Source: Octopus bimaculoides
Lineage: Eukaryota
DNA length: 64,000 bases
Assembly (NCBI RefSeq): GCF_001194135.2
Contig: NC_068986.1
Span: forward strand, 90,743,444 to 90,807,443
Direction of reading: 5' to 3'
In this document: positions 36,130-64,000 of the stretch, one piece after another
Layout: each line of letters begins with the position of its first letter
How positions within the stretch are numbered: the stretch's first letter is position 1
Position numbers and translations under genes: made by a program
Notes under the pieces: model-generated
The model's database searches: none
What the model was told of the DNA's origin: nothing
Seen by the model: the letters and a program-made list of their open reading frames with translations, nothing else

Positions 36130-36953
36130 AGTGCTAAATAAAAAGTACCCTATACACTCTGTAAAATGGTTGGTGTTAGAAAGGGCATCCATCTGTAGAA
36201 ACCAAGCCAAAACACACAATTGGAGCCTGGTGCAGCTCTCTGCCTGGCCTGCTCTAATCAAAACTGTCCAACCCATGCCAGCATGGAAAACGGACGTTAA
36301 ATGATGATGATGATGATTTATTGTAGACGTGGATGCTTCATCTCATGTTAGTGATGCTGCTTTTATGTAAAAGATTGTGTCATATAGGCGGCGACTCCTC
36401 TATATGTGGGATCATTGGGGACTGTGTTCTATAAAGAACTGGTTTTTGTACTATACATTATATTTCACAGGCAAGCGAAAGCGAAATCGTGATGGAACCT
36501 GTGCCCAGCGTCGCCTTCCTGGCACTTGTGCCGGTGGCACATGTAAAGACATTCGAGCAAGATCATTGCCAGTGCCGCTGGACTGNNNNNNNNNNTGTAA
36601 AGACATTCGAGCAAGATCATTGCCAGTGCCGCTGGACTGGCTCCTGTGAAGGTGGCACGTAAAATACACCATTTTGAGCGTGGCTGTTGCCAGTACTGTC
36701 TGACTGGCCTTCGTGCTGGTGGCACATAAAAGCACCCACTACACTCTCAGAGTGGTTGGCGTTAGGAAGGGCATCCAGCTGTAGAAACTCTGCCAAATCA
36801 GATTCGAGCCTGGTGTAGCCATCTGGTTCACCAGTCCTCAGTCAAATCGTCCAACCCATGCTAGCATGGGTTGGACGATTTGACTGAGGACTGGTGAACC
36901 AGATGGCTACACCAGGCTCGAATCTGATTTGGCAGAGTTTCTACAGCTGGATG
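36130..36953. mobile_element. SINE family C (3' module ending in CAT/GAT repeats) cluster with a terminal palindrome
   Basis: GGTTGGCGTTAGGAAGGGCATCCAGCTGTAGAAAC..CCAACCCATGC(C/T)AGCATGGAAA.CGGACGTTAAATGATGATG. Related copies at ~16300-16460, 23975-24095, 25210-25390, 49990-50180, 53600-53735, 57440-57570, 58640-58750 and 61695-62260. Confidence 0.85.
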
Positions 36954-41952: not shown

Positions 41953-42463
41953 TCACTTTTCACTCTCTTTAGTTTGTTCACACTTTTCAGATTCCTTCCC
42001 AACATCCTGTAACTGCCATGGAGTATCTGACTCAGCAGAATGTAAAGATTCAGATGCTTGTGGGTTTTTATTATCAACAAGCTCTTCTGCCAGTTCTTGT
42101 TCTTCCACTTGTGGCTCTGTTGGTTGCATTTCAGCTTCCAGGGTTTCAATTTCTGTCAAGGGCTGCATCTCCAGCTGGGTCTGTTTTAATGGAACCCTCT
42201 CGGAATCTTCCACAGAAAGTTCACATATCTCTGGTGAAGAGGGCAAGTTGTGGGGGTTAGCTGTCTTGGCAGCTGGCGAGAAGGATGGCACTTCTGGTGA
42301 GGGTAGAGGAGGCGAAGGCAGTGCAATTACCAATGGCTGAAAGTGGACTGAATTCATATTTGTAGGGTCTTGATGGTCCTGTGGTGAATTGGAAGACACC
42401 AACTGCAATGGCTCGAGACATATAGATGCAGATGCAGCAGCAGCTGCCTTTTCCTTGCGTTTT
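41953..42463 (-). CDS. Terminal coding exon: cytoplasmic tail KRKEKAAAAASASICLEPLQLVSSNSP...CEQTKESEK*
   Basis: cttttgttgcag| acceptor, phase 2, 511 nt open to TGA at 41955-41953; includes track ORF 41953..42408. Confidence 0.85.
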
Positions 42464-43950
42464 CTGCAACAAAAGACAATGAATGAGAGAAAAACTGATC
42501 TGCATCTTGATATTCAAATTCAAAGACAAAAAAAAAAGATAGAACAAACTTTAGAAATATAGCTAAAAATTGTAAATTAAGAAATCTTTCGGAGAATCTA
42601 CACAATCATTATAGATATCAAGCAAAAAAACATACTTTAATCAATCATCAATATTACAAAACAAAATCTCTTGATCTGATCTTTCTTGATCAACTCTTTA
42701 ACTTTGCCAAAACTGCATCCCTACTTCCCCTAAAACAGATTTCCTCTTCATGGCCAGAAAATAATTCAATCCTCATCAATTGGTGACCCTCTATGAAACT
42801 CGAACAAGATCCAAATTACAGTGCTCATATGTATAGAACAGTGTTTCTACTTTCAACTAAATACGTATCAGAGAACATGTAATAGAAAGCCAACCTATCA
42901 GTTACTAAAAACATCTTCATCAATGGGTAACAATCTCTGGTTAAAAAACATGTGTAATGATATCTATGTCTTCAACAATGGCTTCCATTCCTCTGAACTG
43001 TACTACCTCAGTCTAAGTCTACATGGTCCATGAAGCTCACATTTTTCTATTCATTCTTACAGATTTGGTAAAGTGCTCTGAACCCTTTACTTAATCCATC
43101 CTTTGCCTAACTTTGGCCATGCAGTATCCCTCCTTCCCCCACACTATTCCTACTGATATCAACTTTCAGCAATTCATGTTGCACCAAAGAAACCTCACCA
43201 ATCAAAGGTACTTCCTCTCCTGATGAAAAGAATTCATGAAAGCTAGATTTATTCAATATTTAGGTTGCAAACCCCAGAAAAATTAACATATTTTAAAACC
43301 TATTTATGGAGCAGGAATAACTCTGAAAAAAGCTCAAAAAACTGTTACAAGCAAACTCTATAAAGTTTGCATCAAGAGTGTGCATGTGATGCAAAAGACA
43401 AACTAAAATATATAAATAATGCATGATAGCAAGACATAAGCACTAAGTGTGGAGGTTGGAGAGAGGAATCGAGCAAGATTCATTGGATGTGTAAGGTTAA
43501 TTTGCAGACAAAAGGTGGAACCAAAGCAATCTGAGAAATTAGTTAAGCATTAAAAAGGTGTTGGCTATTCAATGTTAAACTGAGCAGGAGTGCAATGTAA
43601 TGTGTACCCATAGTAGACATTTAAAAAAAAAAAAAAACTGCTGGACCTCATAGCAGACTGAGAAGTATGACAATATGCAATACTTCACAAGTGTCTAACC
43701 AATACCAGTATGAAAAAAGGGTAATGTGATTCCCAGTTGTCTGAGTATGTCAATGTTTAGAAAGACAGCTAAAAATAGTTGATAACAATTAGTATGATGG
43801 CGTAGCAAGAAGCTTGCTTCCCAACCACATAGCTCCAGTTTCAGTCCCACTGCGTGGCACCTTGGGCAAGTGTCTTCTACTATAGCCTAGGGCTGACCAA
43901 AGCCCTGTGAGTGGATTTGGTAGACGGAAACTGAAAGAAGTCCATATTGG

Positions 43951-43982
<32 letters not shown>

Positions 43983-46900
43983 TTATGTTAGTCCCCCCCC
44001 CCNNNNNNNNNNTATATATATATATATATTTATGTTAGTCCCCCCCCCCCACCATCACTTGACAACTGATGTTAGTGTACTTACATCCCCATAAATTTAG
44101 TAGTTCAGCAAAAGAGACTGACAGAATAAGTACTAGGCTTACAAAGAATAAGTCCTAGGGTCAATTTGTCCAACTAAAGGCAGTACTATGGTATGACTGC
44201 AGTCAAATGACAAAGAAATAAAAGCATGTATCTTTGTGAGTTGAGTTCATTCTGATTTCAATACCAGGCTGAAGATATTTTGATTCACATATCAACAGCC
44301 AAAAGAAAAATGTTCCTCTTAACCTACTAGAAGATCAATTATTCAGAAACATACTTCATCCCACTCATTTGTTGCATCCAACCCTACTATCCCCATTCCT
44401 TCTTCCCCAGAATATCTGCTTTCTGAAATGTTCCTGCTCACACAGAACTTTAAAGGTATCGATCTAACCAGTCCAAGAGTGCCTGCAAGGACCACAAACT
44501 CTGGCCCTTCTAGACTCAATGAGTGAGTGAGCAACTAAGTATAGCCCTATGAGCTGGCAGAAACAAATGAAACCCACATATTTGCTCCCTGTATAAATAA
44601 GAATGCCACTGGTCTCAACTTTGGTATTCGTGTGTACAATTGTAAGGAGAAATCTCCACATCAGTTGGCATGAGTACCAGTAATACAGAACAGCTGATTC
44701 AATCAACAAGACTCAAGCCCCTAGCTAGCCTAATTACACCTTCCATCAGAAGTCTTTTAACAATAGCATAATGACTTTACATTGACCCAATATAACATTT
44801 ATTGCTAAGCGGACATAGAATCAAGTCACTCTAATCATGACTATACAAACATAATTAGTTACAGTCTGTCTAGAAGTATATTAACCAATGTGACTTATTC
44901 TAAAGCTGAGGATGTGATTTAAGGGTGATTAGGTTGCTATTTCTAGCAGGTCAAGTGACCACAGAGGCTCTCCCATGGGAACTGGTGTAATGGATTGCAT
45001 CAATCGCAGTACATACCTAGTACTTATTTTGCCAAGTTTGTAGGGACAACAGTCATAATCAATCCTAGCAGAAATAAAACAAAATACTTTTAAGATAATT
45101 TGTCTTATACTCTTCACTTTCTACCAAATCACAACCTTTACAATATTGCCATTCCTAAAGGTAGCGAATTAAACATACTTTGAGATGGGAGTAAATTACA
45201 TGTTAAAGGATACAGATATGGCTGCATGATTAAGAAGTCCTCTTTACAACCCATTGGTTCCAGGTTCAAATCATCCCACAAAACCTTAAACAAATGTCTT
45301 CGGTAAGGTGCATTCCAGAAGTTTTGAGACTTTTAGAATAGGTAGTTCTGTCCTAGATAATTGTAATTTCAGTTTAGCATTACTATACATCAAATAAGCT
45401 GACCTGCCAACTTATTCTACATTGAAGAAGATGGCTAACAGCACTTTGAACACACCCTACTAAACACTGCACATTAGTCTGCAGAATGCAGTCAGTGGAT
45501 GAAGACAACTTGGAAGCTCACTCAATATGCAATAAAATCTTGTATTAAACTAGGCAAAATGCTACAGAAATTTATGAAATGCTCCAGACTGCTTATGGAT
45601 TCACTTGCAGGAGCCAAGCATTTTTTTCTTTTTTTTGCTAGCATAAAAGGTTGCAGGAGAGTAGAGAAGAGGTAAGAAACAATGAGATGTGACAGGGAGG
45701 TCAAAACATCAGAGCTGGTTGAAAAAAATTTGCTATTTTCTGGAAGAAGACCACCAAGTGTCTATAAAGACTAAGCCTGCAGTTTGGAGTTGAGGTGGCA
45801 ACTGTACACAGAATTATCCATGAAGATCTGAGCATGCACAAAATTTATGCAAAGTTTGTTCCCAGGGTACTCAATGACAATCAGAAGGAAAGATGTGTTG
45901 GTGACAGCAGGGTGATGGTGGAGTTCATTACCTCCTATCAAAGATTAGAGTTTCTGGTGACCTGTGACAAAAGCTGGATCTACTTTCATGATCCAGAGAC
46001 CAAGAGACAGAGTGCACTATAGAAGCAGCCTGGCTTCACCAGACCCAAGAATACTAATATTGATACCCTTTTTTAACATCAAGTGCATCTGCTAGACAGA
46101 ACCCAGTGCATATAGATAATGCCCAACAAAGTGTACTTTGAAGGTTTTGAGGGAGTTCAGGAAGAGATTCCCTTGCAAAAGGCCAGAGCTCCTCCATTCA
46201 GGTCAGTGGCCTCTGCACCAGGTCAATGCACTGCCCACAGTTACATCCTGGTGACCAACTACTTGACAGAGAGGGATATCAAAACTGTTCCTCACCCTCC
46301 CTACAGTCAAGACCTTGCTCTCTCTGACTTGATTGTTCCTCAAGCTGAAGGAGAGCCACGTGGGCAGTTGTTTTGAAGACTGAGAAAATGAAGAAGGCTG
46401 TAATAAGAATCCTGGGCTCCATCACCTTGAAGGGCTTCCATGAGAACTTCACAAAGAGGCTGGAGTACTAGAATAAGAGCATTAAAATCTGAGGATCCTA
46501 CTTTGAAGGAGATTAAAATTTTGTACTTTGAAATCAATATCTCTTTAAAAAGAGTCTGAAAATTTCTGGAATGCACCTTATGCCATAGTCTTAGGCTGAC
46601 CAATGCTTTGTAAGAGGAATTTAGTAAAAAGAAACTGTATAGAAGTCCATCATTACTTGTATCAGCATTCACTAGGGATTAAGATGAGCCAATTCCAGCC
46701 AGTGACTCCACAAACAGAAGCTCGTTATACCTGACAATCACAGATGTCTGACACTGCACACCACATTGCAAGAACCAGATATTGATTCAAAATCAATGTT
46801 TTCATCACACTTATACACATATGCCTGTGCAGTGATAATGATGTAGCTTTCAAATGACAACCACCCAACTGTAATTTTGCAAGAAGTATTCACAGATAAA

Positions 46901-49900
46901 AAGACATTGATAAGCAATTCTCATTTTCATGTAAACACAATGCATAATTTAACCTCTTAAACTAAACCAACCTTTTTAATTTATTATTAATAATTATCTT
47001 AATTATTATACTTCATTTATCTGCTTTATATAAATTTTCCTCATTTATTTGCTTTATGTAAATTTTCCACTGATAACACTGAAGGGAGGCAGAGTAAATG
47101 GGAGATAAAATGCGATTGAGATTTGTAAAAGAGTATAAAATGTTCCAGTGTGGGAAGATGTAAATTTAATCTTAGTATTTAAACTGGTCATATCAAGCCT
47201 AAATATTCTGTCTGGTGCTCAAATTACCAGCTCTGGCCTCTCACACTTGCTCTACAATGTCATTCAAAAATTAATCATTGAAATCTTGAAGCCATGAGAC
47301 AATACATAATTCAAAACATTGTAAAATAAGCATTACATTTGATAGGGAAAACAAAGTTAAAAAGCATTTACTGACAAACCACCGCAACCAGTACTAACTT
47401 TTACAACCAGATATCCAAGGTAGATCAAAAACTCAAAAAACAGATCAAACTTCAGTGATAAGCTTCCCAGATATGATGAAGCACAGACAAGATTCTAAAA
47501 TGTGTTGTATTGCATATTCTCTCAAACTTATTCTGGTTGTTCAAAGTTTGTTTGCTTTCTTGAAATAAGTTCACTTATCTGTACAGATGGAACATCTATT
47601 TTAACTAAGACTAGTATTTAGCAGAGAATTCTATAAATGTATACATATTTAAAATATTTTAAAGAAATTAATGACATTTTTTTTTTTTAATATTTCAAAG
47701 CTTTCAATAAATTTCTGAGGAAATATATATTGGTAATTACAATTTCACAAACTTAAAATATTACATATAAGGTTCAATTATTTCCAAGTCAGCCAAGATT
47801 AAAAAAACTCATGATCAAAAGATCACCCCACATGTTCAATCATCTTTTTTATAAATCTAGCTACATAGTCCAACATGTCCTATTTTGAAGGATAGAAGAG
47901 TGCAATTTGAGGAAAATTGGATAATGCTTTTCTGCCAGGTTAAACTTCCACATTGTTTTGACTCTTATTCTACATATCAACAAGCCTAACCTTCAATTGT
48001 TCCAGAATCCTATAAATGCATATTTCAACTAGTTTCAACTCAAAATTTTTATTGTGAATGCAGACTTAACTCCAAGCTGAGATCAGTGGCATAATTACTA
48101 AAACTACTGAAATGTTAAAAGACATGAAAAAAAAAAAAATCTTTTCTTCATCCAAAAAGCACAAATAAATAAAACTTACTTTTTCCAGACAGCTTTTACA
48201 ATGAAGAACAAGATGATCATGATGAAGAAACTTGCACTGCAAATGGCAGCTAAGGTTCCAATAGAGAGTTCATGAATTGATGGTAAAGGCTTAGAGCCCT
48301 GAGCTAGTTCTGCAGAACAAGAAAAGTCACAGATTTGAAAATACATACATACCATTTAGATAGTATTTTGAAAGTACTGAGAAATTTGTAAATAGGTCTT
48401 AATTTTTTAGAGCGACTCAAATTTGCTATTATTTATAGCTACGTTTGCATTTGAGTAACTTAATAAAAAAATCACACTAATGTGTGTGTGTGCATACACA
48501 CACACACACAAAATTTTTTTTTCAGTATAGCCTTGCTGAATAGTTAATTTGTATCATTTTACAATTGTGTCTTTCCAAGAAACTACCATTTAGCACAGTC
48601 TGCAAACATCTTCAAGCATAACCTTTAGGTGATCAATGCCTGCAAATATAATTTGGTAAATAGAAACAGTGCAGAAAACTATCAGACACAGATCTGCATA
48701 AATCCTTCACTAATATATACTAAGAAACAATGTAAACAGCAGTGAGTAAACCGACAAGCTGATATATATCTTAACATTTGAGGTTTCATTTTTTTTTTTT
48801 TTTCTGCTGAAGTGGCCGATGCTTCTTTGTTACTCTCTGGCTACTATAAAACAGTGAACCAGTGGTTGGCTTATTAGGAATATTCACATTGTTCACAAAA
48901 AATACAATATTACGAGAAAAAGCAAACTTACCAAAACAAGTTTCACTATCAGATTTAGCCCAGCCTGGACAACAGTCTAACACTGTGTGGTATATAGTTA
49001 TATTTTGGTCATATCGTTTCAAACAAGTTGTTGTCCTAGTGGAAAATATATAAAAAGGATGATGGACTTGTGGACAGGAATAAGCTTCTAATGATCATAT
49101 TTTTAACACAGACATGAAATGCACACATGGCCTGTCAAGTGTTTGTTTTATATACCTCATTTATAAAAGTAGGTCACTAACAAGCTTTGTCCAAACAAGA
49201 CAATGTAACAAGAACAATTTATTTTCACAGCAAAAAATTGATTAAAAAAGAAAAAGAGCATAAGTCAAATGCTATACTATTAACTAGATGCTTCATATGA
49301 CAGTGGGAAGATACAACTATCTATTCTTACAATAGAGATTGATTGGAAGATGCTATGAGAGATCTAGACTCAATATTGTGCATGCAGCAAGACTTAAATT
49401 GCAAACTAATATCTTATTCTAAACAGCATTAAACAGTTGAATAACATGGTTAAAAAGATTTTTTTTTTTAATGTGTATAATTTTCAGAAATCTGGAGAGA
49501 AATTAAAGATACTAACAAAACTCAAATACAAGGAAAAGTTCAAATAAAAAGCTCATTGTATAACATACTTGTAAAAAGTACACGAGTCCAAAGAAAAAAA
49601 TCCACAACGAGTGACATATTTTTGAATGCATTTCTTTCTCTCAACAACTTCCCTTGTTTTCTCTTCCTTGACGCTCTTTTGGCACCATCTTCCACTGCAA
49701 AGGGATTAAAAGAAAAGAACTTTTTAAAAAGATTGAGGAGAGGAATCAGTAAGTCATCCTAAATTCTTGGAAAGTAAATCCATCATCCCCACCAACTGTT
49801 CAAGATTTTCCAGGAAATATTTTCAAATCAGCTGATTACCAGTTAGACCAATATTCTGCAAGTACCCAGGGATATGTGAAGGAATGTGTCTAAGTGATTA

Positions 49901-52900
49901 GGGTGTTGGACTGATAAAGACATGAGTTCAATTCCTAGACTGGGCAGTATGCTGCATCCACGATCAAAGCACATCATCTCACATTGCTCCAGTCTATCAT
50001 CATCATCATCATCAGTTTAACATCCATGGCTTTGGGTGGTTTGACAGGAACTGATGAGCCAAAGTTCTGTGCAAAGCTCCAATGTCCATTTGGAATGGTT
50101 TCTATAACTGGATTCCCTTCCTAAAGCCATTTACTTCACAGCATGTACTTGTGTACTTTTTACATGGCACTGGCACTAGTCAGATGAAAATGAATACAGT
50201 TGATTGCTGCTTCAGCCCTCCTTGTCACATCCTTGATATTCTGCTGGATCAAGGTTGAGAAGGAATATGTCTACTCATGACTACATAGGCAGTGAAAACA
50301 ATTTGCCAAAGTGGTACAAACTCCCAGGTTATATTCACTTGTGGATGAGTTAAACCTGTACATGTATACAGCCAAGGATTTCCTTCAAATTACATTATCC
50401 ATACCGCCTTTTTACATAGTTTGCTAGAATAGTCCGTCTCCCTTACATCACTTTATACTAAGTGACAATACTTTGGCTTGCTGGATCAACAATTCATATG
50501 CTGCTACTACAGAAAGGAATACATCAAAATATCCTCAGCCCAGAGAACTATACCTAATGCTTACAACAGTGTGAACACTGCAAAAGCACTCAAGAGCCAT
50601 AGAGTGGTAACTTTGATATTGGTACAAAGCATTTTTTTTTTAATTATGTCAGAATATGAGGGTCCGGTACCTATAGTGTAAATTTGTTCAAATAAATACC
50701 AGTAGACAAAACAGATTCTTGGTCACAATTTTGGAAAGTTTAACGAGGAAATTTGTCATATGAGACATAGTAGGAATGATAAAACAGGTGGGTTTACCTC
50801 TTGCAAAATATCAACTACTTGGCAAAAATGCAGTAACAAATTGGCCAGTTATTCACAAAACGAAATCAATACAAGAGGCTTGGTTTACCTGCTAGATGCA
50901 GACAGAGACACAAAGGTACCAAGAGAGCTCTAAAGAAATGGGTAGACAATATGAGAAAAGATAGGAGGAAAGGAATTAAAGCAGACATAGGATGGGGAGC
51001 TCAGGATTAGAGGGCTTCTTTAGGTATAACATTCAAGCAGGTTCAAAATCTAGAAACATTCAAACTTCCCTTTGATAAAACATTTGAAATATTTAGAGAG
51101 GTGGTGTAGAAGAGGGTGAGATAGAATGAATACAGAGTAACCAGAGACTATTGTGATGATGAAAACCAGAGAAGACAACCTCCTCCACCTTGATATATAA
51201 TTCCCATCACCCTGACAGCTAATTTATAAGAGGACAGCAGTAAAACTGTAATAAACCCTCATCTCAGTCAACTGTTACCATGCTAACCATGAGAATATTA
51301 CACTAAAATGACCAGTCTGTGTTCCCCTAACATTTAATGACATTTAAAAGATGATCTTGCCAATAAATAATTAAACCAAGCTTTTATCCTTTTCATATCC
51401 TCAAAGGAGGTGTGTGTGTATGTACACACATACACACACAAATGCATATATTTGTGTGTGTATGTATTATACATGTATATACTGAAGAGATACTATTTTA
51501 GGTTTGTGCTTTAGTTTTCCCTGAATCCTTGCTTGCTCGCTCTCTCCCCTATACTACAGAGAATGACATGACAAAGAAATACTTAGTTACTCATGAAGGG
51601 ACTTCCAAAATGAACACATCGAGAATGTGTGTCTGAATTCAGAACACAAAGATCCTGTCCAACATTAATAATTCCATAACTGCACCACCCAAGACTGCAG
51701 GACAAATATCATAAAGAACTGTATCCAATGGTTTACTGACTGCCAGTTCATCTGCAAATGCATGGACATACACACACTTGGATTGCATTACCCTACTCAA
51801 TAAAACAGACCAAATATCATGTACATAGTGTTAATGTTTGATTTTGTACAAATGTATGGAAGCCTGTGGCATATAAAAACAAAAATAGCTATAAAGAAAT
51901 TATATATATATATGAGGTTAGGTGTAAATATACTGGCATTCCATTGGTTACAACAAGGATTTCAGTTGATCTGATCAACAGAACAGCCTGTTTGTGAAAT
52001 TAACGTGCATGTGGCTGAGCACTCCACAGACATGTACCCTTAATGTAGTTCTCAGGAAGATTCAGCATGACACAGTGTGACAAGGCTGACCCTTTGAAAT
52101 ACAAGTACAACTCATTTTTGCAAGCTGAGTGAACTGGACAGAGCATTGTCAAGAATTGAACTCTTAACCTTATGATCACGAGCAAATTACCCCAACTACT
52201 AAACCACGCACCTTCACTTAGTTATGAATAGTTAAGAGGAATCATTTTACAGACTTTTACATTGTGTATTTTATAATATTTATAATGTTTTTTTCAATCT
52301 AGTCATCCGTCTTATTACTGGATAGACATGGTTTTAAACTGGATTCAAACCAACTCAGAAACTATTTCTTTACTGAAGACACTAAACTTAGGATAGTTAC
52401 ATGAAGGATCCTAGCTAGAATTCAGTTAATGATGTGTTTGTGTGTGTGTGTGTGTGTGCGTGCACATGCACACACATTGTCCCCCACAAAAATGTGTACA
52501 CACTTTAAAAGCAGATAATTTCCATTGTGGATTTGACCCTTTAGAAATAATGAAGGGAGCCAGACCAAGCTTTGAACAGAGGAAATTTAGTCCTAAAGTA
52601 CTACTGGAAGTTTGAAATACAGTTGAAGTGCAAAAACAGTTTAGGTGGAGTATCAAACAAATCCATCTATGTGACTTCCCATCACTTGAAGTAGAGATAA
52701 GTCAAAAAAGATAGAACTATTTAAAATGTCCCCAAGTAGTATTCCAGAAAATGACCTACACAAAGCAAGAAAGGATACCAGAAATGTATTTCTCGAGTTG
52801 AAGAAAATCTGTGTAACAAGCAAGTCATAGACAAATTTCAAAATCAAGCATTCTGAAGTGCTGTCATTGAAAACTTCTATTCTAAGAGTAGTCCAAGATC

Positions 52901-55900
52901 TCAACAAAGATTATCCAGACAGAAGTGTAGAGTTTTTCAAGTGGTACTTTAGAAGATATGTAGAGGATGCACACTTTCCAACAAAGACTGGAGTAAGGAG
53001 GTTAAATTTAAATTAAATGGCTCAATCAATCATCACAATTGCACTCACTGGGAACTTAAGCATCTGCATACTACAGAGGCATATGTTAATTTATTAGGAT
53101 CTACTGATTTATCAAAAGGATTGGACTTCTTTTTTGTTATGGTACAGTGAATGCTTCCATTAACTTTAACATGTGACAATGTCATGTTGAGCATTCAAGA
53201 AGACATTGAAGATGTAGAGATTTATTTCCAGCAAGATGGGGTACCTGACATGTTCACCAGACCTCATGCCAATAGATTTTTTATGGAAATACTCAAGGGA
53301 TAAAGTTTACAGTACAATCCCAGCAACAGACAAATCAGGAGAAGCCACTGAACAAAAGTGCACAGAGATACCGAACAAAATTTTTCTTGATCTCCACAAT
53401 TCCATCGTTTTATCAACAGTGCCTGGACCAGAACAATCACCAGTTTGAAAACAAACTTCCATTTAAAAAACTGAATTGTCTAGATTCCATTAGATTTCAA
53501 AAATGAAATTCATTTCAATAAACACTGACTTATAGTCATTCAATGTGTGCATACATTTTGGAGGATACTCTGTTTTTATGTGTGTATGTATATATTCACT
53601 TTGTAAGGTGGTTGGTGCCAAGAAGGGCATACTGCCATAAAAACCATGCCAAAACAGACGGTGAAACCCAGTGTAGTCTTCTGCCTAGCCAGCCCTTATC
53701 AATCTGTCCATACCAGAATGGAAAATGGACATTAAATAATAAGAAATAAGACACCTGATTGTAATTGGAGACAAAAATAAATACTGTAAATATACATTTT
53801 GATGAGATTAATAACCTAGAAAATTATAGGGTTGGTCCTAATTTAAATAAAAGGGATTGTAGAAAGATCTCATATTAACAGATTAAAAAAAAACAAAAAA
53901 ACTTAAAACACTAAAGTGGGCCAACTTACCTAGAGAAATTTAGAGTTGCTTGACCTACTAAAAATAGATACATATACTATCAAACCTACACCAACTGATG
54001 GTCATTTCTATCTTCTCTAAACATGTATATAATACAATTAGAGAACATGAATAATTAAGATAGCAGTAATATTTGGAAAAAAATCTAATTCAGTCAACAA
54101 TGCATTCATTCAGTTGTAAGACTTAACAAGGTTCTCTTATTGATTTACGTAACTCATTTCAACACAAGACCAAATATTCATATACAAAATCACTACAACA
54201 AAAAGATATTGTAAAAGTGACATTGAACAATTACTACAAATGAAGATGAAGGATTCTTATTGGAAACATGTAACACAGTCGGCAATAAAAAAAAAAAAGA
54301 AAATAAGGACACAATGGATTGAGCAATTTGGTCTTTTTCATCACAGGACTTATTTGAAGCTGACCTCAGATTAAACAAAGTTGTCACAATCAGAGGATGA
54401 AGAGCCTCAAAGAACTAAGTTTAATTTGTATTCAAATGTAAAACTAGCCACTGGCAAAGTCTGCAAAAGGCCTAGAGGAAAAAGTTGTTTAAACCTTAAA
54501 TCCAAAACAGTTGCTTACCTGTCAACCTGAAAGTAAAAATTTATTTACTACAGGCACTTACAGTTCTCCTCTAGTACTAGAAAGGACCCTGCCCTGATCT
54601 TAGTCTAGATCAAACATTTCAAGGATACTTTAGCAAAACAGTCATCCATCTACCACTTAATCATGAAGGTAATATGGCTTAGAGGTTAGAGTGTTGGGCC
54701 CGTCATCATAAAATTGTGGTTTTGGTTCCTGGACCAGGCAATACATTGTGTTCTTGAGCAAAACACTTCATTCTCATGTTGCTCCAGTCCACTCAGCTGA
54801 CAAAAATGAATAATCCTGCAATGGATTGGCGTCCTGTCCAAATGGGGAACATATAAGCCATGAACCTTGGAAACAGGCCCTTATGAGCCAGTATGACTTG
54901 AAAAGGTAACTTTATTTAATGTACACACTGCCTTTCTAAAAGATCTCAGATCTGGTGTCTATTCACATCAGTTGGCTGAAGTGAAGCTTGATAAAGTCTC
55001 ATAAAAGTGCTTGATAAAGTCTCCTTTCAAGGGATTAAAAACAAACTAGTAATCCATGCCTTATCCAGTAAATCATTTTGCCATAGCTATACTATTATTC
55101 ACAGAATCTAATTTATACAGATTACTGCCTGAATTATAGTACTATAACCAGAAATGTAAATACATTAACTAAGTTGATACACATAAGAGTTACAGCAGGA
55201 AACAAGGGAGAAGGAAGTAGAAATCATGAAACAAATATAATTAACCTTTCAAATTATGCCAACAAGTGTTAAAAAATAAAAACAAACTTCTAAAATACAA
55301 AAATGACATTAACCTATGTGTTTATTATATCATTCTGGGAAGTTATGGTTGTCTACCAGACCTACTGACATTATTATTAAAATAAACTTTTAAGCTATCA
55401 CAAACATATCACACACACTATAAAACATCAATCAGCTAAGTATATTTCATGATTGTGTAGCTAATTCATCTATTTCAATAGAAATAGCAACTTGCTTAAG
55501 CCAACCCTAAATCTCCTGTTAGTGACCCAATATACACTATCCATGCTTAAAATATTGTACTTAAATCAAAATCTAATTTGAAATCTCATTCCATAAAACC
55601 TCAGTAAGTGACAATTTTGTTATAGAATTTTTATTTCAGTTTTTTTTAAAGATCTTACTATTACTAATAATCAAGAAATTCACTTAATTGCTAGAGAAAG
55701 CAGCTCTATCTCCCTCAAATCACATTGCCTTCATAAGATAAAAAAGCAGGGGACACAAACACTGATGAAACATTTTAAATTATAGGTCTCCTAGAGATAC
55801 ACAACCAATAAATTGACCACTGTAGCCCCTAAAATACATGTTGAATGGTCAGAGTTAGAATACTTCTGATTATAGGTCAAACAACAAGAACCTACTCGTA

Positions 55901-56289
55901 AAATCTGTTTTAAAAGAATGGAGACCATAATTGGAAAACTGAGTAAAGAGGTTTTTATACCAAACAGCTAAAACTTTGATGTCAAGAGAGCATTATTTTT
56001 AAAGTTCTCAAGAATAAAGGCACAAAGATAAATGACAAAGCAAGTGTCCAGTAGATCTGTTCTACATAAATCATACCAATTATCACTAAAGGAAAGACTG
56101 AAACTTAAGGAAACAAAGGAGTGATTCTTTATAAATATTTCCATTATCTTTAAGGTGTTGGATGTGAAGGTAGTATACTCCTGCACTACCTTTAAAGATT
56201 GAGTTATGTGAGGGGTGAGAAAGGATATAATTAAGAGAATGGGTTCAGCAACTTACTATGCTACCCAAAATGGACCATAGGAGAAACAT
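41953..56289 (-). CDS. Six-exon gene model: EMI-like domain single-pass type I membrane protein, 303 aa
   Basis: join(56289-56257, 54526-54519, 49694-49569, 49035-48932, 48309-48180, 42463-41953) = 912 nt. All introns are GT-AG, phases match, no internal stop. The last four exons are firm; the first two are less certain. Confidence 0.8.
43790..44210 (+). mobile_element. SINE family C head and body, split by a (TA)n tract and a gap
   Basis: TTCAGTCCCACTGCGTGGCACCTTGGGCAAGTGTCTTCTACTATAGCC; related copies at 16030-16180 (minus) and 63340-63700. Confidence 0.8.
45306..46578 (+). mobile_element. Full-length fossil mariner transposon
   Basis: TIRs AGGTGCATTCCAGAA / TTCTGGAATGCACCT with TA on both sides. 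Fragments KFCIKLGK, AKFVPRVL (WVPR-like), TCDKSWIYFHDPETKRQS, HPPYSQDLALSD (YSPDLAP-like). Stops and frameshifts. Confidence 0.92.
48180..48309 (-). CDS. Transmembrane exon: LAQGSKPLPSIHELSIGTLAAICSASFFIMIILFFIVKAVWK
   Basis: ttttcttgttctgcag| acceptor, |gtaagt donor, 130 nt phase 1-2; hydrophobic stretch followed by a basic KKKRK stop-transfer after splicing. Confidence 0.92.
48932..49035 (-). CDS. EMI-like domain, C-terminal half: TTTCLKRYDQNITIYHTVLDCCPGWAKSDSETCF
   Basis: ttttccactag| acceptor, |gtaagt donor, 104 nt phase 2-1; CCPGW hallmark; NIT glycosylation sequon. Confidence 0.92.
49569..49694 (-). CDS. EMI-like domain, N-terminal half: GRWCQKSVKEEKTREVVERKKCIQKYVTRCGFFSLDSCTFY
   Basis: ttttaatccctttgcag| acceptor, |gtatgt donor, 126 nt phase 2-2, in frame with the next exon. 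Confidence 0.9.
50700..51370 (+). mobile_element. Decayed LINE RT and 3' end fragment
   Basis: Degenerate RT-like peptides with many stops; related debris at ~3000-3250, 24100-24330, 41230-41450 and 63780-64000. Confidence 0.35.
51930..52210 (-). mobile_element. SINE family A, diverged full-length copy
   Basis: Colinear with 23240-23582. Confidence 0.8.
52474..53572 (+). mobile_element. Fossil Tc1/mariner-superfamily transposon
   Basis: Imperfect TIRs TGTCCCCCACAAAAATGTGTACACA / TGTGTGCATACATTTTGGAGGATACTCTG. Fragments NTVEVQKQFRW, DYPDRSVEFFKW, NGSINHHNCTHW, FQQDG, SPDLMPIDF. Confidence 0.85.
54519..54526 (-). CDS. 8-nt microexon GTTGACAG (V-D-S)
   Basis: aaatttttactttcag|GTTGACAG|gtaagc; supplies the phase 0 to 2 shift needed between 56257 and 49694. 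Confidence 0.65.
54665..54900 (+). mobile_element. SINE related to family A (tRNA-like head)
   Basis: TGGCTTAGAGGTTAGAG..GGTTCCTGG head; CCAGTCCACTCAGCTGACAAAAATGA core shared with 51930-52210. Confidence 0.7.
56257..56289 (-). CDS. Candidate first coding exon, signal peptide MFLLWSILGSI
   Basis: ATG with an in-frame TAG just upstream; hydrophobic; |gtaagt phase-0 donor. The signal peptide is short, so the true start may lie on a further exon. Confidence 0.55.
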
Positions 56290-59200
56290 TTGCTGCTATA
56301 ATTGGCATTGAACTTGCAAAGCTGACAAGAAGTATTGAAGTATCAGTGAAATACAACTGAACAGTGCAAGAGGTATTAACATGATTAGGCAAGAATGAGA
56401 CAACAGAGTTGATGTAGAGATTATTATCAGAAGTGAAAAAGATGTCAAGGTTATTTTGAGTGTGGTCTGCCAGGGACATATTTAGTAACTGTAGCTAGTC
56501 ACTAACATAATTCAGAGTGACAAAATATTTAGCCTATGTGCAAGAACTAAGGAGTCATGTATACTGCTAGCAAGATTGGGTCCTTAAGGACATGAAAATT
56601 TCATAACTGCTAGTTATTGAATAAGTTGAACCTAGAATTTGAGAAGTGGGGAAAGTGTTTTATGCATGCATGACCATCACCCTTCAGAAATATAGATTGA
56701 AATATAGATTGCGACATGAATATTTATGTCTCAGAAGAATAAAGAATGTTAAGGGTTAAAACTAAATAGTGCACAACATTGAAACTGACTTTCTATGGTG
56801 CTATAACCAATATATAATCAATGAACTATGAATAAATAACACTTCAAAAGTGCTGCTGCTACTACTAACACAAGCTTACAAAAGCTGGTACCGTTAATTA
56901 AATCAACTACCCCTTCCCACACACACACATATATATATATATACTACCAGCAATACACAGGGTTGAATGAATTCAGCCCAGTGTATTCCTCCTTTGCAAA
57001 GATTGGTCTTGTGCCAAACAAAGAAAAACCACACTTAAACATTAAAATAATGTAATGAGATTAAAACATACTATATGTGTGCATGTGTGTGTGAGAGAGA
57101 GATCATACCTTAAAATTCTTAATTGATAATCTCAGATCAATATTGTAGCAGTTTGCATGGCTATCTTTTAAGACATCATGACTGCACAAATTGAATATAG
57201 GACAGTGCAGCATTCTGGACATTATGCTGGGTCTGCTGGTGCTAGCAATATTCTGCCTGTCTATATCAGAATGTATTTTATATTTTATTAAAAACGATGA
57301 ATCCAACAAAGCACATTTTTGTTAGACTCCTTGTTAAAACATAAATGCTCACACTGAGTATCTTTATTCTAAGCAACCCATGTTCTTATGAACAGGTAAC
57401 CCCAGGACTGTAATATGCTATTATATATATATATATATATATATATCTCAATCCATCCATAGAAACCATGCAAAAGGTGATGACTGGAGCCTGGTACAGC
57501 CCTCTGGCTTGCTACCTCCTGTTAAACTGTCCAACTCACCAGTATAAAAAACAGACATCAAAGGATGATGATGGTGATATATATTTATTGTTTCTGTCAT
57601 TGGATTGTGCCCATGCTGGGACACCACCTTGAATAGCTTAATTGAACAAATCAACCCCAGTACTTGCATTTAAGTCTCGTACTGATTTTATTGATCTTTT
57701 ATCAAAGTCCTAAGTTACAGAGACAAACAAACCAACACCGGTTGTCAGAGAGTGGTGGGGGACAAACACAAAGGAATACATACGCACACACATATATATA
57801 TATACATATATACATGATGAGGACATGTGAAAGCTTGAAAGAAATTAAGCCAGCATGCTCTGGTAGCAGACAATAGGACTGAAACTATGAAGTTAGGAAT
57901 CAAACTTAACCAAAGAGCAATGCTTGTGTGTATATATTTTATCTTTCTCTGGTTTCAGGCATAAGACTGCAGCCATGCTGGGGCACCACTTTGAATTTTA
58001 GTCAAACAAATCAACCCCAGTACTTATTGTTTTGGAGCCTGGTACTTATTCTATCAGTCCCTTTTGCCAAACTGCTAAGTTACAGGGACACAAACACCAG
58101 TTGTCAAGCAATGGTGGGAGACAGAAACAAAGACAAACATGCACATACACACACAATGTTATATCCAATGTATTGCTGTAAAATTGGGCCCCATAAGGTT
58201 TTTATCAGTAGCTTTGTATGAGGCTTGAACCAAAACCTACAGATTTTTTTTTTTAGCCCAACAATATGCAAAAGAGTTTTAGAGGTGACATAACCCTGTA
58301 AATGCAATTTATGTAAGAGGGTAATAAAAGCTGATACAGGACTGATACTGCAGTCCTCAACTGGTACTAGGCTTTCCAATGAAAATCTCATGTAGAAATG
58401 GCATCATAAAATGCACCAAGTCAATACTGTAATATTATTGCCAATTGGAAGGCAATGAGTCATAAGAAAACATCAATTCACAAAAACTAGGAGATTCTTT
58501 GCTGTTTGTGCCAAATGATGAAGGATTGAGACAGGTGATGAAACACTGTGGTACTAATTCAATCAATACACCAGAATGGGAAATACTGCTCTAAACAGAT
58601 ACACATAGTAACTTTATGTGAATGTATATACACATACACATCATCATCGTTTAACGTCCGCTTTCCATGCTAGCATGGGTTGGACGATTTGACTGAGGAC
58701 TGGTGAAACCGGATGGCAACACCAGGCTCCAATCTAATTTGGCAGAGTTTCTTCAGACTAACCATTAAACAATCTAAACACTTGCTTGGGTGCACCAGTC
58801 TTTTCTTCCTAATACTGGATTTATCAGGAAGCAAACGGCAAATAAGTCTTTTCTTTTAAAAAGAAGTATTGACAATTTGCCTTTTAATTGTTACCCTAGT
58901 TTAAAACAATTTGCTTATATTGCTGTTATTAAACAATTCTGTGGTGGCTGACCAAGGGATATTGTTTCCAAACTTCGCTAACTAATGCTTCTCGCCTCCT
59001 TGTCAACATCCCCATTCCCCCAATATTCATATACATACATCTAATATCAGACCAGAGTAATTTAAATCCGGGTTTGACGATGCCGTTGCTATTATAGTCA
59101 ACGCAGTTCACCAAGATAATACACTAAAAAAAAAAAAAAAATTATACATAAGCACAATTTACTTAGTGAGTGCAACACCCAGTTTTCCAAGAGGATGCTC

Positions 59201-59339
59201 AAAGCATTTTCATTGCCTCTGCCCCACCCCAAAAAAGAAAAAAAATTAGAGGACGCACTTGCACCCCCTGTTCCAGAGCCTATGTAATAAGTTAATATTA
59301 TATAGGAGCAAAATCATTTGAGAGCTATCCCATCTCCTT

Positions 59340-59720
59340 CGCTAGAATTTGATCCTGAAAGTGTATGGTTGTGATTCCGCGCACGTGCTTGCATGTGAAA
59401 AGGTTTGCGTATAAACACGCACACGAGTGAGCGAGCGAATAAGGAAGTTAACGCACAGATTGGGGATGGGTCAACTTTCCAGTGTTCCAGTTTTAAGTAG
59501 CTGACAATAAAAGAGAAACGGTCATGTGTTTTGTAAGGAGGATTTTTACCAGATTGAATGTCCTAAGAAATTTGCTGGTTATTGAAGAAATGAGTTGATT
59601 ATGCACAAATAATAAAGAATACTATTTTAAATTTTCATCCACAATTGATTTATCAGTTTTTGTTAAAAATGTTTTTTTTTAAACTTTTTCCGCCCACGCA
59701 CTTCCTTTACTACAAAACTG
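59340..59720. promoter_or_regulatory. CpG-containing candidate promoter/enhancer
   Basis: CCGCGCACGTGC (E-box/NRF1-like), GGAAGT, and CCGCCCACGCACTTCCT (GC-box/ETS-like) in non-repeat DNA ~3 kb upstream of the candidate ATG. Confidence 0.3.
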
Positions 59721-60819
59721 AACACATGCATCCTATCACGGGATTCTGTAACAAGAGCAAAAAAAATAAATAAACAAACAATTAAATGTCATTTCCCCAC
59801 ACACCCGATTCACCTCATACATTTTTCTACATGTACCCTTCGGTATTTAGACAACTTTTAATATATAACGTTACATCTGCTTTGTAACTCAGGTGAAACG
59901 GATGTCTCGTGTAGTTGTTTATAGGAATAAAAGGGAAAATGACTGTAAATCATTGTAGATGTAGCTTTATTTTTCAGACATTTCAACGAGCAATAAAGCG
60001 ACGAAAGGAGAGAGATTAAGTTTGTGACGTAAACATGGAATATGTAAGGTTAATGAGTTAATGAATACTTATTAACTCTCGTTACAGATCATAATGTGAC
60101 AAATACGAGATGAGTCAGCTTCTACGTGGATTTTCGACCTGCTAGAAATAGGTACCAAATCTCTAATTCACACACCACCTATCTTGGAAAAGGACAATGG
60201 ATAAGGTGGTCCTGGGTTCCCTGGACATACGAAATTGACGGGAGGATAACGGCCGGAATTTCTTTGTTTTATCAGAGCTGACCGTGGGTTGAACAACACA
60301 CACTAGTGATCTTTAATGAATATAATTTTGAAAGTTTTTCCTATGTTACAAAGCCACATATTTATGGGGAGGGATGTAGTCGATGGACTAGATTCATTTG
60401 CACTTTATGAGGATAAAAATATACTTCAGAAAATAAAATAAAAAGCTAAACGAACGTCGGCGATGAGACTTTTTTTTTTTTTGTTAATATTAGCAAAGGG
60501 TTACAAATGTGGTGTGTGGTGGAACGGGAGTAGGGGCAGTAAATTCGATTAAACTTTCTCCAGTAAATGCGTTGAGGGGAGAAACTGAATCACTAAACTC
60601 ATACATCAGCACGTGAGAGTGAGTATGCAAAGACACTCCTTAAGAACAGTTCAATGACCGTTAATCATACACCGTATACAAAATCTGCATGATGCAATAT
60701 TCGACACACTGGATAAAAAAACTGGAGGGATTAAAGTCAGTGATTAAGTACAAGGCTACATTTGTGAGAAAGAAAGAGAAAGGAAATGAGAGAAGCGAAT
60801 ATGAAAGTGGTTCGTATAT

Positions 60820-61000
60820 AACTTTTACTCGTTTCAGTCATTGGACTGAGGCTATGTTGGGGCACTGCTTTGAAGGATTTAGTCGAACAGATCGATCCCA
60901 GTACATATATATTTTTCTAATCTGGTACATTCTATCGCTCTCAAACCGGTGTTACGGTGACGTAAACAAACTATCACTGGTTGTTACGCAGTGGTGCCGA
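60820..61000 (+). mobile_element. SINE family C middle module
   Basis: CTCGTTTCAGTCATTGGACTG.GGCTATGTTGGGGCACTGC..; similar modules at 15855-15960, 30380-30545, 57590-57780 and 57950-58150. Confidence 0.75.
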
Positions 61001-62437
61001 AGGGGCAATAGTTAGAAGCACCTTCCCAAGGTTGAAAAGCGAAGATCTTTTCAACACCTAAATTATGAATAAGGAACAGTGAAATACGGAGCTATTTAAG
61101 AAATCATTTTCAAAGAGGGTACAGTGTGACTTGGGTGTTATTTCTACCAGGTTGAACGATTCCTTGAGGATGGGGTAGGGAACTTCACTAGAACCAAGGG
61201 TTAAGTGCAAGAACTTATAGACTATGAGCAAAGCTGAATTTACTATTAAGAAAAATAAGCAGGCAGGTCAACAAATAAAGAAAAAGAGAAGCAGAATATT
61301 TTTCCAGTGTTGAACTTTAGTGCACACACTCAAGCAGTCTTCCTGCAATTTCCATCTGCCAAATTCATTCATATGGTACAGGCTGGCCCAATACTATAGA
61401 AGACACTTATCCAAGATGTCATAATACATCTTTATTTAAAATTCTAAAACAATTTGACACTAAACCGAAGGATTACTAGATACTCTTTAGCAGAGTACAT
61501 GTAAATTTTTACAAAGATGGCAAACAAGCTTAAACTTCGAAGTTATCCTCTCACAGAGAAGATAAAACTTTGTGAGGAATGGTGATATGCGGTGCTTAAG
61601 AAAATCCTGCCAGCTATGCTAGCATGGGAAAACTGAGGTTCTGAAAGCATAATGCGTGTGCACACAACAGTCAAGCTTGCACCTTTTTCTTATATATCAT
61701 CATTTAGCGTCTGTTGTCCATGCTGACATGAGTTGGCCAGTTTGACTGGGCTGGCATGCTAGAAGGTTGCACCAGAATCCAGTCTGATTTGGCATGGTTT
61801 TCTACAGCCGAGTGCTCTTCCTAATGCCAACCACTCCAAGAGTGTAATGGATGCTTTTACGCACCACTGGAATAGGTACCATTTGCATGACACTAGGGTG
61901 CATTTACATGCCACCAGTACAGATGTCAATTTGCGTCACTTATCTGCTACAACTGCAATTTTGCGCAGTTCAATAGGTCTTCTCTAGCACAACATAATGC
62001 CAAAGGTCTTGGTCATTGCCTCCAAGAGGTCCCCATGCTTGAAACGAACTCAGCCACTTCGCCTCTGTGAGGCCCAACATTCAAAAGATGTTCTTTACGT
62101 GCCACCAACACAGCTGCACATGGCTTGTCAGGTCCTCTCAAGCACAGTACATCACTAAAGGTCTCAGTCAGCAGTCACTGCCTCTGTAGGGCTCAATGTT
62201 TGAAGATCATGCTTCACAACCTTGTCCCTTGTCCTCCTGTGTCTACCTCTACCACAGGTTACCTCCACAAATTATTCTCAGATTACAATAATAGTTAGCT
62301 ACTTTTCGTGCATTTGAAAACATTGAAATTTAAAGAGTATAGAAGATTACATAATTCAAATGAAATTCATAGACGGAATACAATCAGTTGAATATCATGT
62401 AAATCATTAAAAAAAAATCTTCAATCAAAACTTAATA

Positions 62438-62703
62438 CAGTGGAAGTTCAGTTTAACAAATACCTCTCAACATGAGCAAATCGGTTTGTGAACAATTTTT
62501 TAAACACAAATATTTCAGGTGATGAACAGTGTCTCGAGTAACGAACATGCAAGCTGGCAACGACAGTTGGTGATAAGCTGGGAGTATCAAAGGGAGATAG
62601 TTCCTGCTGAGGTTCTACTATGGGGAAAAATAATTTTGGTTTATTAACATTTCAGGTGAAAAAGCCTTCGGGTAAAATTTAAATTTGTTAACAGGTTCCA
62701 CTG
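62438..62703. mobile_element. Tigger/pogo-type MITE
   Basis: TA|CAGTGGAA..TTAACAAAT and ATTTGTTAAC..TTCCACTG|TA inverted ends; ~266 bp. Confidence 0.75.
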
Positions 62704-62944
62704 TACAGGCATTGAATTTATACAATAGCATGAAATGATTTCTAAATTTCAAATAACCAAATTGAAAACACAAATATTAGGGTGGCCTTGATATTGCGAC
62801 ATGTTGATAAAAGAATAAACCTGGTTCTAAGCATTGTTTTAGTGGATATAAGCATAACCCATCAAAATATCCAGTCAGTGGTTAAGTAAATTAAATTTAA
62901 TATAAACATTTATTTTCAAGCAGTTTGTAAATCCACAAAAGCAG

Positions 62945-63230
62945 TTGAAGGATTTGAAAATAAGATTTCAAGGATTCATGAAATCGGTTGAAAGCAATAC
63001 TAAAATGACCAAAGCAAAAGTCAATCTTAATGTTAAGATGCAATTTATCACTGACAGTGAGATAACTGATATCTCAAAAGTGGATTGGTTTTATAAACCA
63101 AAATGCAATCACAAGTTAAAACAATTTGTTCCATCATACATTGATATTTTGGAGAAACTTGAAGCACTTGTTGTGAGCATTATTGTTACTGGTTTATTTG
63201 TTATAGGAGGATGAATATCAAAAATGTTCA
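62945..63230 (+). mobile_element. Possible decayed hAT transposase C-terminal fragment
   Basis: LKIRFQGF..DWFY..MNIK loosely resembles Charlie/SPIN-type C-termini; weak. Confidence 0.3.
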
Positions 63231-64000
63231 ACATTGATTTATGAGATGTACATTCCAGGGGGAGATTACCTAAACTGATGCAAGTAGAAAAAGGTACATT
63301 AGAAATACTTCCAGAAGATGGACATCATATCATGATAAGTAACTATAGCTGAAGCAAGTTGCTAGGCATGGCTGTGCAATTAAGAAGCTCTCTTTGCAAC
63401 CATGTGGTTTCAGGATCAGTCTTGGGCAAGTGTCTTCTATTATAACCCCTAGCTGACAAGTAGCTTGCGAGTGAATTTGGTAGAGGGAAACTGTGTAAGC
63501 ACCCATTGTAGGTCGCTGTTTAAGAACTGGTGTTGGTTTCTTTACATGTCCATAACTTAGTGGTTTGGCAAAAGGGACTGATAGAATTGAAAAAGACTTG
63601 AAAAATTGGGTACTTGAGTAGATTTGTTTGACTAAGCCAGTCAAGGTGGTGCCCTAGCATCACCATAGTCCAATGACTGAAACAAGTAAAAGAAGGTAGA
63701 AGAAATATAGAAAAGGAAACCTTGAAAACTGTATGGTGCACATAAAAAGCAAAGCATTTTCTCTTTGGTCAAATATTTCAATTGGCCTCACTCAGTACAG
63801 AAATGGTGATATGAAATAAGATGCAACTTCTGCTTTTATTAATTACAGCAGCAGAATAATACAGCAAATAGGAGAGTAATGGAGGGATGAGTAGGGATAG
63901 GAGTGGGGTTAGGGCAGCAAGAGTGTTGGGGAGAGTTGGAGAGGAACATAAGCAAGGGTGCAGATGGTCAATGCTAAATGAAGTGGGCAGTGACAATGCT

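Follow-up and report, generated by a model that had tools for sequence, protein, structure and literature searches.

A minimal EMI-domain membrane protein encoded by Octopus bimaculoides LOC106869812 and its mollusc relatives

EMI domains are well known, and their binding partners are poorly understood. To our knowledge, every characterised EMI domain adjoins epidermal growth factor (EGF), NIM, collagen, coiled-coil or gC1q modules. The 64,000-nucleotide stretch of Octopus bimaculoides DNA analysed here (NCBI RefSeq assembly GCF_001194135.2, contig NC_068986.1, positions 90,743,444 to 90,807,443; called the window below) raises the question of whether a membrane protein can carry an EMI domain as the only module of its ectodomain. 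On its minus strand, this 64-kb window holds exons 2-5 of the gene LOC106869812, which encode residues 50-339 of the 339-amino-acid (aa) protein XP_014771182.1. A first-pass annotation, made from the sequence alone, had described a minimal receptor at this locus in which one EMI-like domain is followed directly by a short stalk and a transmembrane (TM) helix. We regard the gene structure of LOC106869812 and its EMI-only membrane architecture as close to certain.

Gene structure and layout of the protein

The gene was found by using a query composed of the exon encoding the CCPGW sequence, the TM exon and the terminal open reading frame (ORF). This query retrieved XP_014771182.1 (isoform X2, an uncharacterized protein), together with its orthologues in Argonauta hians and in RNA-seq assemblies. 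When mapped back onto the window, XP_014771182.1 falls on four exons at 100% identity, and the spliced translation runs uninterrupted to the stop codon (Table 1). All four exons have canonical AG/GT splice sites, such as the acceptor ...tttgcag/TGGAAG and donor TTACAA/gtatgt of exon 2 and the corresponding sites ccactag/GACAAC and GTTTTG/gtaagt of exon 3 (slashes mark the exon boundaries), and the introns between them are 533, 622 and 5716 bp long.

In the hydropathy profile, residues 27-49 and 140-170 form two hydrophobic segments with the EMI domain between them, and the gene product is thus a predicted type-I single-pass membrane protein. Its layout consists of an N-terminal hydrophobic signal region, one divergent EMI domain, a stalk of ~17 aa (FELAQGSKPLPSIHELS), the TM helix, a polybasic juxtamembrane region (KAVWKKKRKEKAA) and a cytoplasmic tail. 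The TM helix, with a Kyte-Doolittle maximum of 2.83 for the 19-aa window over residues 146-164, opens with the small-xxx-small motif G-T-L-A-A-I-C-S-A. The tail is 175 aa long and has no Tyr residues, 20 Pro residues and 31 acidic residues (Asp and Glu combined).

An ectodomain this short might reflect an incomplete gene model, with further ectodomain exons present in the real transcripts. Exon 1 lies outside the window, and a search for an O. bimaculoides transcript returned no record, both of which favour this explanation. However, the six-cysteine EGF pattern is not matched by any open segment of the 622-bp or 533-bp intron or by any frame of the whole window, and no EGF match in Pfam is found among the 31 members of the protein family described below. 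The cuttlefish orthologue (a cluster that includes Acanthosepion pharaonis CAE1322950.1) is represented by an uninterrupted 1143-nt ORF on RNA-seq contigs of 2.2-3.2 kb from many sequencing runs. This ORF encodes the signal region, EMI domain, stalk, TM helix and tail in that order, with the EMI domain joined directly to the stalk, and the contigs are evidently spliced transcripts. The same minimal EMI-stalk-TM layout is present in the Argonauta and O. vulgaris models, and the isoforms of the gastropod Babylonia vary in the stalk only. The EMI-only architecture is genuine and not the product of a missed exon, and we consider an incomplete model to be extremely unlikely.

Most structural details in the first-pass annotation agree with these results. 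The eight-cysteine EMI-like domain ending in CCPGW..C is borne out by exons 2 and 3, and the intron between the EMI and TM exons is exactly the predicted 622 bp, with no EGF exon inside. The stalk, given as ~15 aa, is essentially as described, and the proposed stand-alone EMI-TM architecture is backed by the cuttlefish contigs, the Argonauta gene and the absence of EGF matches in the family. The gene was also said to be missed by the ORF track, which is true of the ORF list that accompanied that annotation but not of public resources. NCBI holds two isoform models of LOC106869812, and UniProt entry A0A0L8HMG1 is named 'EMI domain-containing protein'. The gene had already been modelled and automatically annotated in public databases, and the window itself holds only its four 3' exons.

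Table 1. Positions of LOC106869812 features within the window
Feature	Position	Strand	Description
Exon 2 (A)	49569..49694	-	Last base of the codon for His50, followed by the EMI domain's N-terminal half, GRWC...FYK (GRWCQKSVKEEKTREVVERKKCIQKYVTRCGFFSLDSCTFYK; Cys 1-4); 100% tblastn match to aa 51-92
Exon 3 (B)	48932..49035	-	The EMI domain's C-terminal half, TTTC...DCCPGWAKSDSETCF; tblastn match
Exon 4 (C)	48180..48309	-	Stalk (ELAQGSKPLPSIHELS), TM helix (IGTLAAICSASFFIMIILFFIV) and start of the polybasic juxtamembrane region (KAVWKK)
Exon 5 (D), coding part	41953..42463	-	KRKEKAAAA..., Pro/acid-rich, Tyr-free cytoplasmic tail; stop codon 41955-41953
Intron B-C, EMI exon to TM exon	48310..48931	-	622 bp, no EGF-like exon
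Intron 1, 3' part	49695..64000	-	Exon 1 lies beyond the window end; the ATG at 56289 falls inside
Cassette exon of predicted isoform X1	45017..45064	-	48 nt; AG/GT flanks and reading frame checked
Assembly gap	44003..44012	.	10 N, within the 5716-bp intron C-D, lying 4.2 kb after exon C and 1.5 kb before exon D

The 5' end differs from what had been proposed. Annotated exon 1 encodes aa 1-50 (MNKNCC...VIVIVLVCLSQLPALSATESH) and carries the sole N-terminal hydrophobic segment, and neither tblastn nor exact 7-mer matching finds it in the window. Therefore, the gene is 5'-truncated here, and positions 49695-64000 are part of intron 1. Consistent with this arrangement, the Argonauta orthologue has the same five-exon structure, with exon 1 located 12.7 kb upstream of the EMI exon. 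The first-pass annotation had instead placed the start codon at 56289. This 11-codon reading (MFLLWSILGSI/gtaagt) ends in phase 0, whereas exon A needs phase 2 (two preceding bases), and splicing the two together thus creates a frameshift and a stop after 28 codons. The sole alternative donor of the right phase would leave a leader of only 4 aa.

Two further candidates were rejected. A cysteine-containing open segment at 52148-52065, considered as an EMI exon, has no match to XP_014771182.1. An upstream acceptor near ~49086 that would extend exon B (EAYSCPQV...) is ruled out by the annotated protein and its orthologues, which use ccactag/G. Start positions also vary among relatives: in decapodiform transcripts, including those of cuttlefish, the ORFs extend 65-100 residues further upstream than the hydrophobic signal region, whereas the Acanthosepion genome model begins within it.

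The predicted isoform X1 (XP_014771180.1, 355 aa, UniProt A0A0L8HMG1) differs from X2 solely by a 16-residue insert, IDYDCCPYKLGKISTR, in the otherwise invariant cytoplasmic juxtamembrane region. This insert is not found in the O. vulgaris, Argonauta or decapodiform sequences, and the cassette exon may be lineage-specific or spurious. The assembly gap in the last intron has the same ~35-nt TA-repeat/poly-C sequence on both flanks and is most likely an unmerged contig overlap. Because it lies in an intron, the reading frame and coding sequence are unaffected.

A pan-mollusc family with a divergent EMI domain

To define the relatives of the octopus protein, 1.84 billion cluster representatives were searched exhaustively with HMMER, using a cephalopod profile that spans the EMI domain to the juxtamembrane region and a cut-off of E<=1e-3. 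This search yielded 31 proteins, all 108-353 aa in length, and the profile matches family members with E values from 1e-17 to 1e-8. Every named member (16 of 16) is from a mollusc and is labelled 'uncharacterized', 'hypothetical' or 'EMI domain-containing'. The members include bivalves (Potamilus, Dreissena, Pinctada and Crassostrea/Magallana), a chiton (Liolophura), gastropods (Patella, Elysia, Arion, Bulinus, Babylonia and Haliotis, with Nucella from a later search) and cephalopods. Cephalopod orthologues of the octopus gene come from O. vulgaris and Argonauta and, among decapodiforms, from Acanthosepion (Sepia) and others. Further homologue searches with the family alignment (7 candidates) and with a gastropod member (44 candidates) added almost nothing.

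The family has a consistent architecture. A strong TM segment follows the EMI domain in 28 of the 31 proteins, at the end of a stalk of 13-135 aa. This segment opens with the conserved GxxxG-type motif S-x-G-A-Y-A-G-I-x-C, whose cephalopod form is S-I-G-T-L-A-A-I-C-S-A, and K/R-rich residues come after the segment. An N-glycosylation sequon is located between the fifth and sixth cysteines in 26 of 28 members. LOC106869812 has all of the defining features, namely a signal region, an eight-cysteine EMI domain, a stalk, a TM segment with a G-x-x-x-[GA] opening plus Cys, and a polybasic juxtamembrane region. Likewise, UniProt entries A0A0L8HMG1, A0A8W8JTA2, A0AAE0SQF0 and A0A0B7A1D5 belong to the same family, each with a signal region, eight-cysteine EMI domain, stalk, GAYAGI-type TM segment and polybasic stop-transfer sequence. 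Compared with other members, the cephalopod proteins have stalks among the shortest (~17-20 aa), a TM motif modified to GTLAAICSA, and much longer tails (148-175 aa versus mostly 27-87 aa).

In gastropod homologues (Babylonia areolata LOC143274910, proteins P0042, P0076 and P0044; Nucella P0077), the EMI-to-TM stalks are alternatively spliced, consist of Thr-rich, mucin-like repeats and are of very different lengths; the Babylonia isoforms differ in stalk length only. Such variation suggests a tuning of how high the EMI domain stands over the membrane.

A literature search gave no paper that mentions the gene or any of six orthologue identifiers, and a search for the SRR runs likewise gave nothing. 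LOC106869812 is a cephalopod member of a pan-mollusc minimal EMI-stalk-TM family that lacks a description in the literature. The earlier suggestion of an undescribed mollusc or cephalopod receptor therefore stands insofar as no paper mentions the gene. However, the protein is not specific to cephalopods, being part of a family found across bivalves, a chiton, gastropods and cephalopods once orthologues were sought in molluscs as had been advised, and it already carries automatic annotations.

The assignment of the extracellular domain to EMI rests on several lines of comparison. The octopus domain has eight cysteines with the spacing C-17-C-7-C-7-C-7-C-16-CC-10-C, and the family retains eight invariant cysteines with a rigid 17-7-7-7-16-0-10/12 pattern. 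The domain occurs once, directly after the signal region, and runs from GRWC to DCCPGW-x7-C. These boundaries are invariant in the family and agree with the xWC start and the CC-x-G-[WYF] end plus final Cys by which EMI domains are recognised. The best Pfam match is EMI (PF07546), covering profile positions 2-68 of 69; the score is 19.5 bits when the full protein is used and rises to 23.1 bits (E 1.3e-4) with the isolated domain. Among isolated family domains, 22 of 28 match this profile over its full length and nearly without gaps, whereas any other Pfam family is matched by at most three. The Pfam EMI gathering threshold of 25 bits is exceeded by two relatives from bivalves, P0058 with 27.1 bits and P0054 with 25.8 bits. 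The cephalopod-only profile aligns to the subfamily of these two proteins with an hhalign probability of 96.8% (E 2.6e-10), without gaps and in the same cysteine register. In addition, the automatic annotation in UniProt independently gives several members, including LOC106869812, the name 'EMI domain-containing protein'.

Other observations weigh against this assignment. Both octopus scores are under the gathering threshold. EMI domains are described as occurring singly at the N-terminus, serving protein interaction and containing three disulfides (PMC11949838), and the eight cysteines found here depart from that number. Only 10 of 28 members, and none of the cephalopods, carry the O-fucosylation motif C1-x4-[S/T], the octopus sequence being C-Q-K-S-V-K. 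However, the source paper grades this POFUT3/4 motif as only 'partially conserved', and its loss is therefore weak evidence. An AlphaFold2 (AF2) model of the domain alone, built from 28 sequences, is all-beta with two long paired strands and a small hairpin (predicted local distance difference test (pLDDT) score 80.5, predicted template modelling (pTM) score 0.33). A Foldseek comparison of this model with the PDB gave no match at E<=0.001 and only generic long beta-hairpins at E>=0.1. Sequence searches of the PDB with two family profiles gave no matches, and an AF2 model of an EMI plus TM construct (4 sequences) was poor, with a pLDDT of 49.6.

These shortfalls in score, motif and PDB matches are what would be expected if the domain were not a true EMI domain, but an unrelated, mollusc-specific, disulfide-stapled beta-hairpin that resembles EMI by chance through its cysteine-rich composition and CCPGW sequence. 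Moreover, the palindromic cysteine spacing and the strands modelled by AF2 suggest a disulfide ladder of C1-C7, C2-C5, C3-C4 and C6-C8, which would differ from the pairing described for EMI domains. Such a chance resemblance is difficult to reconcile with the full-length, near-gapless matches in most family domains, with the two members that pass the curated threshold and their close profile-profile link to the cephalopod proteins, or with the UniProt naming. Published analyses of EMI structure are based on AlphaFold models (PMC11949838; bioRxiv 10.64898/2026.05.13.724420), from which we infer that a solved EMI structure does not exist; if so, a missing PDB match says little. We therefore consider an unrelated hairpin to be quite unlikely; the domain is probably a divergent form of EMI that carries an additional disulfide. 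Its eight cysteines would correspond to the canonical EMI cysteines and an additional pair, with the connectivity as yet a prediction from their spacing.

A Pfam EMI match and an EMI fold had both been named in the first-pass annotation as ways to check the domain. The former is obtained as the top match, although the octopus sequence remains below the threshold that the two bivalve relatives pass. For the latter, a model of acceptable quality was obtained, but the fold search does not confirm an EMI fold.

Possible roles at the membrane

Conservation is distributed unevenly along the protein. Between octopus and decapodiform sequences, identity is 100% in the juxtamembrane region, 65-82% in the stalk, 64-77% in the TM helix and 45-52% in the EMI domain, and falls to 18-20% in the rest of the tail. 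For the TM helix, the range given for octopods against decapodiforms is wider, at 64-100%. The most conserved block is therefore the stalk-TM-juxtamembrane segment (LPSIHELS.GT.AAICSA...KAVWKKKRKEKAA; residues 126-177, window positions 48180-48309 and 42425-42463). Such conservation is unusual for a single-pass protein, and the near-invariant TM-juxtamembrane portion hints at a partner in the membrane.

None of 30 family tails contains an NPxY or a Yxx[LI]/ITAM (immunoreceptor tyrosine-based activation) motif. This absence excludes the PTB/SH2-adaptor route of CED-1, Draper and MEGF10 (PMC8092387), and the tail would thus be unable to recruit PTB or SH2 adaptors. The EMI domain would be the sole extracellular binding surface and would presumably bind an extracellular protein partner. 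The conserved small-xxx-small, glycine-zipper-like TM helix, together with the basic juxtamembrane region, might then support homo-oligomerisation or pairing with a partner membrane protein. Given a tail that lacks adaptor motifs and a stalk-TM-juxtamembrane block that is the most conserved part of the protein, its output would most likely be lateral. Under this mechanism, which we propose tentatively and which has somewhat less than an even chance of being correct, the octopus protein would act as an adhesion molecule or co-receptor and not as a self-signalling engulfment receptor. A point against it is that the idea of oligomerisation through the TM helix draws on motif conservation as its sole support. 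Taken as a whole, the explanation that LOC106869812 encodes a minimal EMI-TM mollusc protein with an adhesion or co-receptor role is, in our estimation, evenly balanced between right and wrong.

The unusual conservation of the stalk relative to the EMI domain could have another cause. The membrane form might be mainly a precursor, with the stalk (LPSIHELS) serving as a sheddase site and the freed EMI domain acting as a soluble ligand in the matrix or haemolymph. In its favour, the majority of EMI proteins characterised so far are secreted into the matrix (PMC11949838), and one relative (P0054, itself an isoform X2) has no TM segment after its EMI domain. However, shedding leaves the fully conserved juxtamembrane region and the conserved TM motif unexplained, and no protease motif was identified in the stalk. 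We judge this possibility to be very unlikely.

A further alternative is that the protein is a degenerate or truncated receptor of the CED-1/Draper/MEGF10/NimA type from which the EGF/NIM repeats have disappeared and which would now serve as a decoy or dominant-negative form in that pathway. The membrane EMI proteins known so far belong to this group (PMC13076899, PMC8092387), and they resemble the octopus protein in their type-I topology, in having one TM helix and in the CCxG[WYF] ending of the N-terminal EMI domain. Their EMI domains are followed by NIM and/or multiple EGF repeats, and their tails carry NPxY and ITAM/YxxL motifs (PMC8092387). Against a truncation, no remnant of NPxY or ITAM motifs was found in the family tails, and no member retains an EGF repeat. 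The exhaustive profile search returned only small mollusc proteins, with no MEGF/Draper-like protein at E<=1e-3. Furthermore, the family-specific eight-cysteine spacing and GAYAGI motif are kept across mollusc classes, which points to an old independent family rather than a recent truncation. A truncated receptor is thus decidedly improbable, and we retain the adhesion or co-receptor interpretation.

A broader proposal, which we consider unlikely although not as improbable as the alternatives above, is that the mollusc EMI-TM proteins constitute a distinct, undescribed receptor class. In such a class, a stand-alone EMI domain with an extra disulfide would serve for recognition, and obligatory TM/juxtamembrane pairing with a partner would serve for signalling, in the manner of small accessory subunits. 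If this is true, the family would offer a natural 'minimal EMI' system for finding EMI ligands, and it might even represent the ancestral core, EMI plus TM, to which EGF repeats were added to give receptors of the CED-1/Draper type. More generally, a family with an EMI-only ectodomain would isolate the function of this domain and provide a candidate adhesion or recognition molecule for mollusc biology.

Surrounding DNA and comparison with known systems

The remainder of the window is AT-rich DNA with microsatellites and several N gaps. Outside the gene, gaps are located at 5081-5409, 6322-6331, 36586-36595 and 36954-37263, two of which are ~310-330 bp long. Two plus-strand regions within the gene introns (45795-46376 and 53151-53448) contain ORF fragments such as ...PHPPYSQDLALSDL..., ...YFQQDGVPDMF... 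and ...CSPDLMPIDFLWK..., which read like decayed pieces of a Tc1/mariner-type transposase. The transposon-like ORF fragments in the window have no Pfam match at E<=0.01. The same is true of a plus-strand block at 18233-21772, which has a GC content of 0.45-0.46 (versus ~0.35) and several ORFs of 140-172 aa on one strand, and is possibly a decayed retroelement. In Argonauta hians, an SBDS-family gene (SBDS_N, SBDS_domain_II and SBDS_C; BAAFZT010000090.1, 1-2909) is located upstream of the orthologue on the same strand.

Three known systems invite comparison with the octopus protein. The first is an architectural analogy only. Syndecan-type proteins are also small type-I proteins with a GxxxG-type TM dimerisation motif and a basic juxtamembrane region, and weak Pfam 'Syndecan' matches occur on the GAYAGI TM segments of two relatives (P0040 and P0028, with E values of 0.021 and 0.87). 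These matches probably reflect the shared GxxxG-type TM segment and basic juxtamembrane region and not homology. There is no significant sequence similarity, and the octopus protein lacks both the glycosaminoglycan-attachment ectodomain and the EFYA PDZ-binding end of syndecans. The resemblance is thus a lead rather than a relationship.

The second comparison is with the secreted 'EDEN' proteins (EMILIN, multimerin and EMID1), which resemble the octopus protein in having a single N-terminal EMI domain that starts with xWC. In EMILIN and multimerin, this domain mediates protein interaction and multimerisation (PMC11949838). However, the EDEN proteins are secreted into the matrix, contain coiled-coil, collagen or gC1q regions and lack a TM helix, whereas the octopus protein has a TM helix after its EMI domain, and neither it nor its family has a coiled-coil, collagen or gC1q Pfam domain. 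Their EMI domains also have three disulfides and the O-fucose motif, in contrast to the eight cysteines and, in cephalopods, the missing motif seen here.

Closest in architecture are NimA, Draper, CED-1, MEGF10 and PEAR1, which are type-I single-pass proteins with one N-terminal EMI domain ending in CCxG[W/Y/F], and the first-pass annotation had drawn a comparison with this group. The octopus protein differs from it in lacking NIM or EGF repeats after the EMI domain, in lacking NPxY and ITAM/YxxL motifs in the tail, and in having an additional two cysteines and a TM motif particular to its own family. As judged from these sequence features, the link does not extend past the EMI domain that both share, and LOC106869812 encodes a membrane EMI protein that is not an engulfment receptor of the CED-1/Draper/MEGF10/NimA type.

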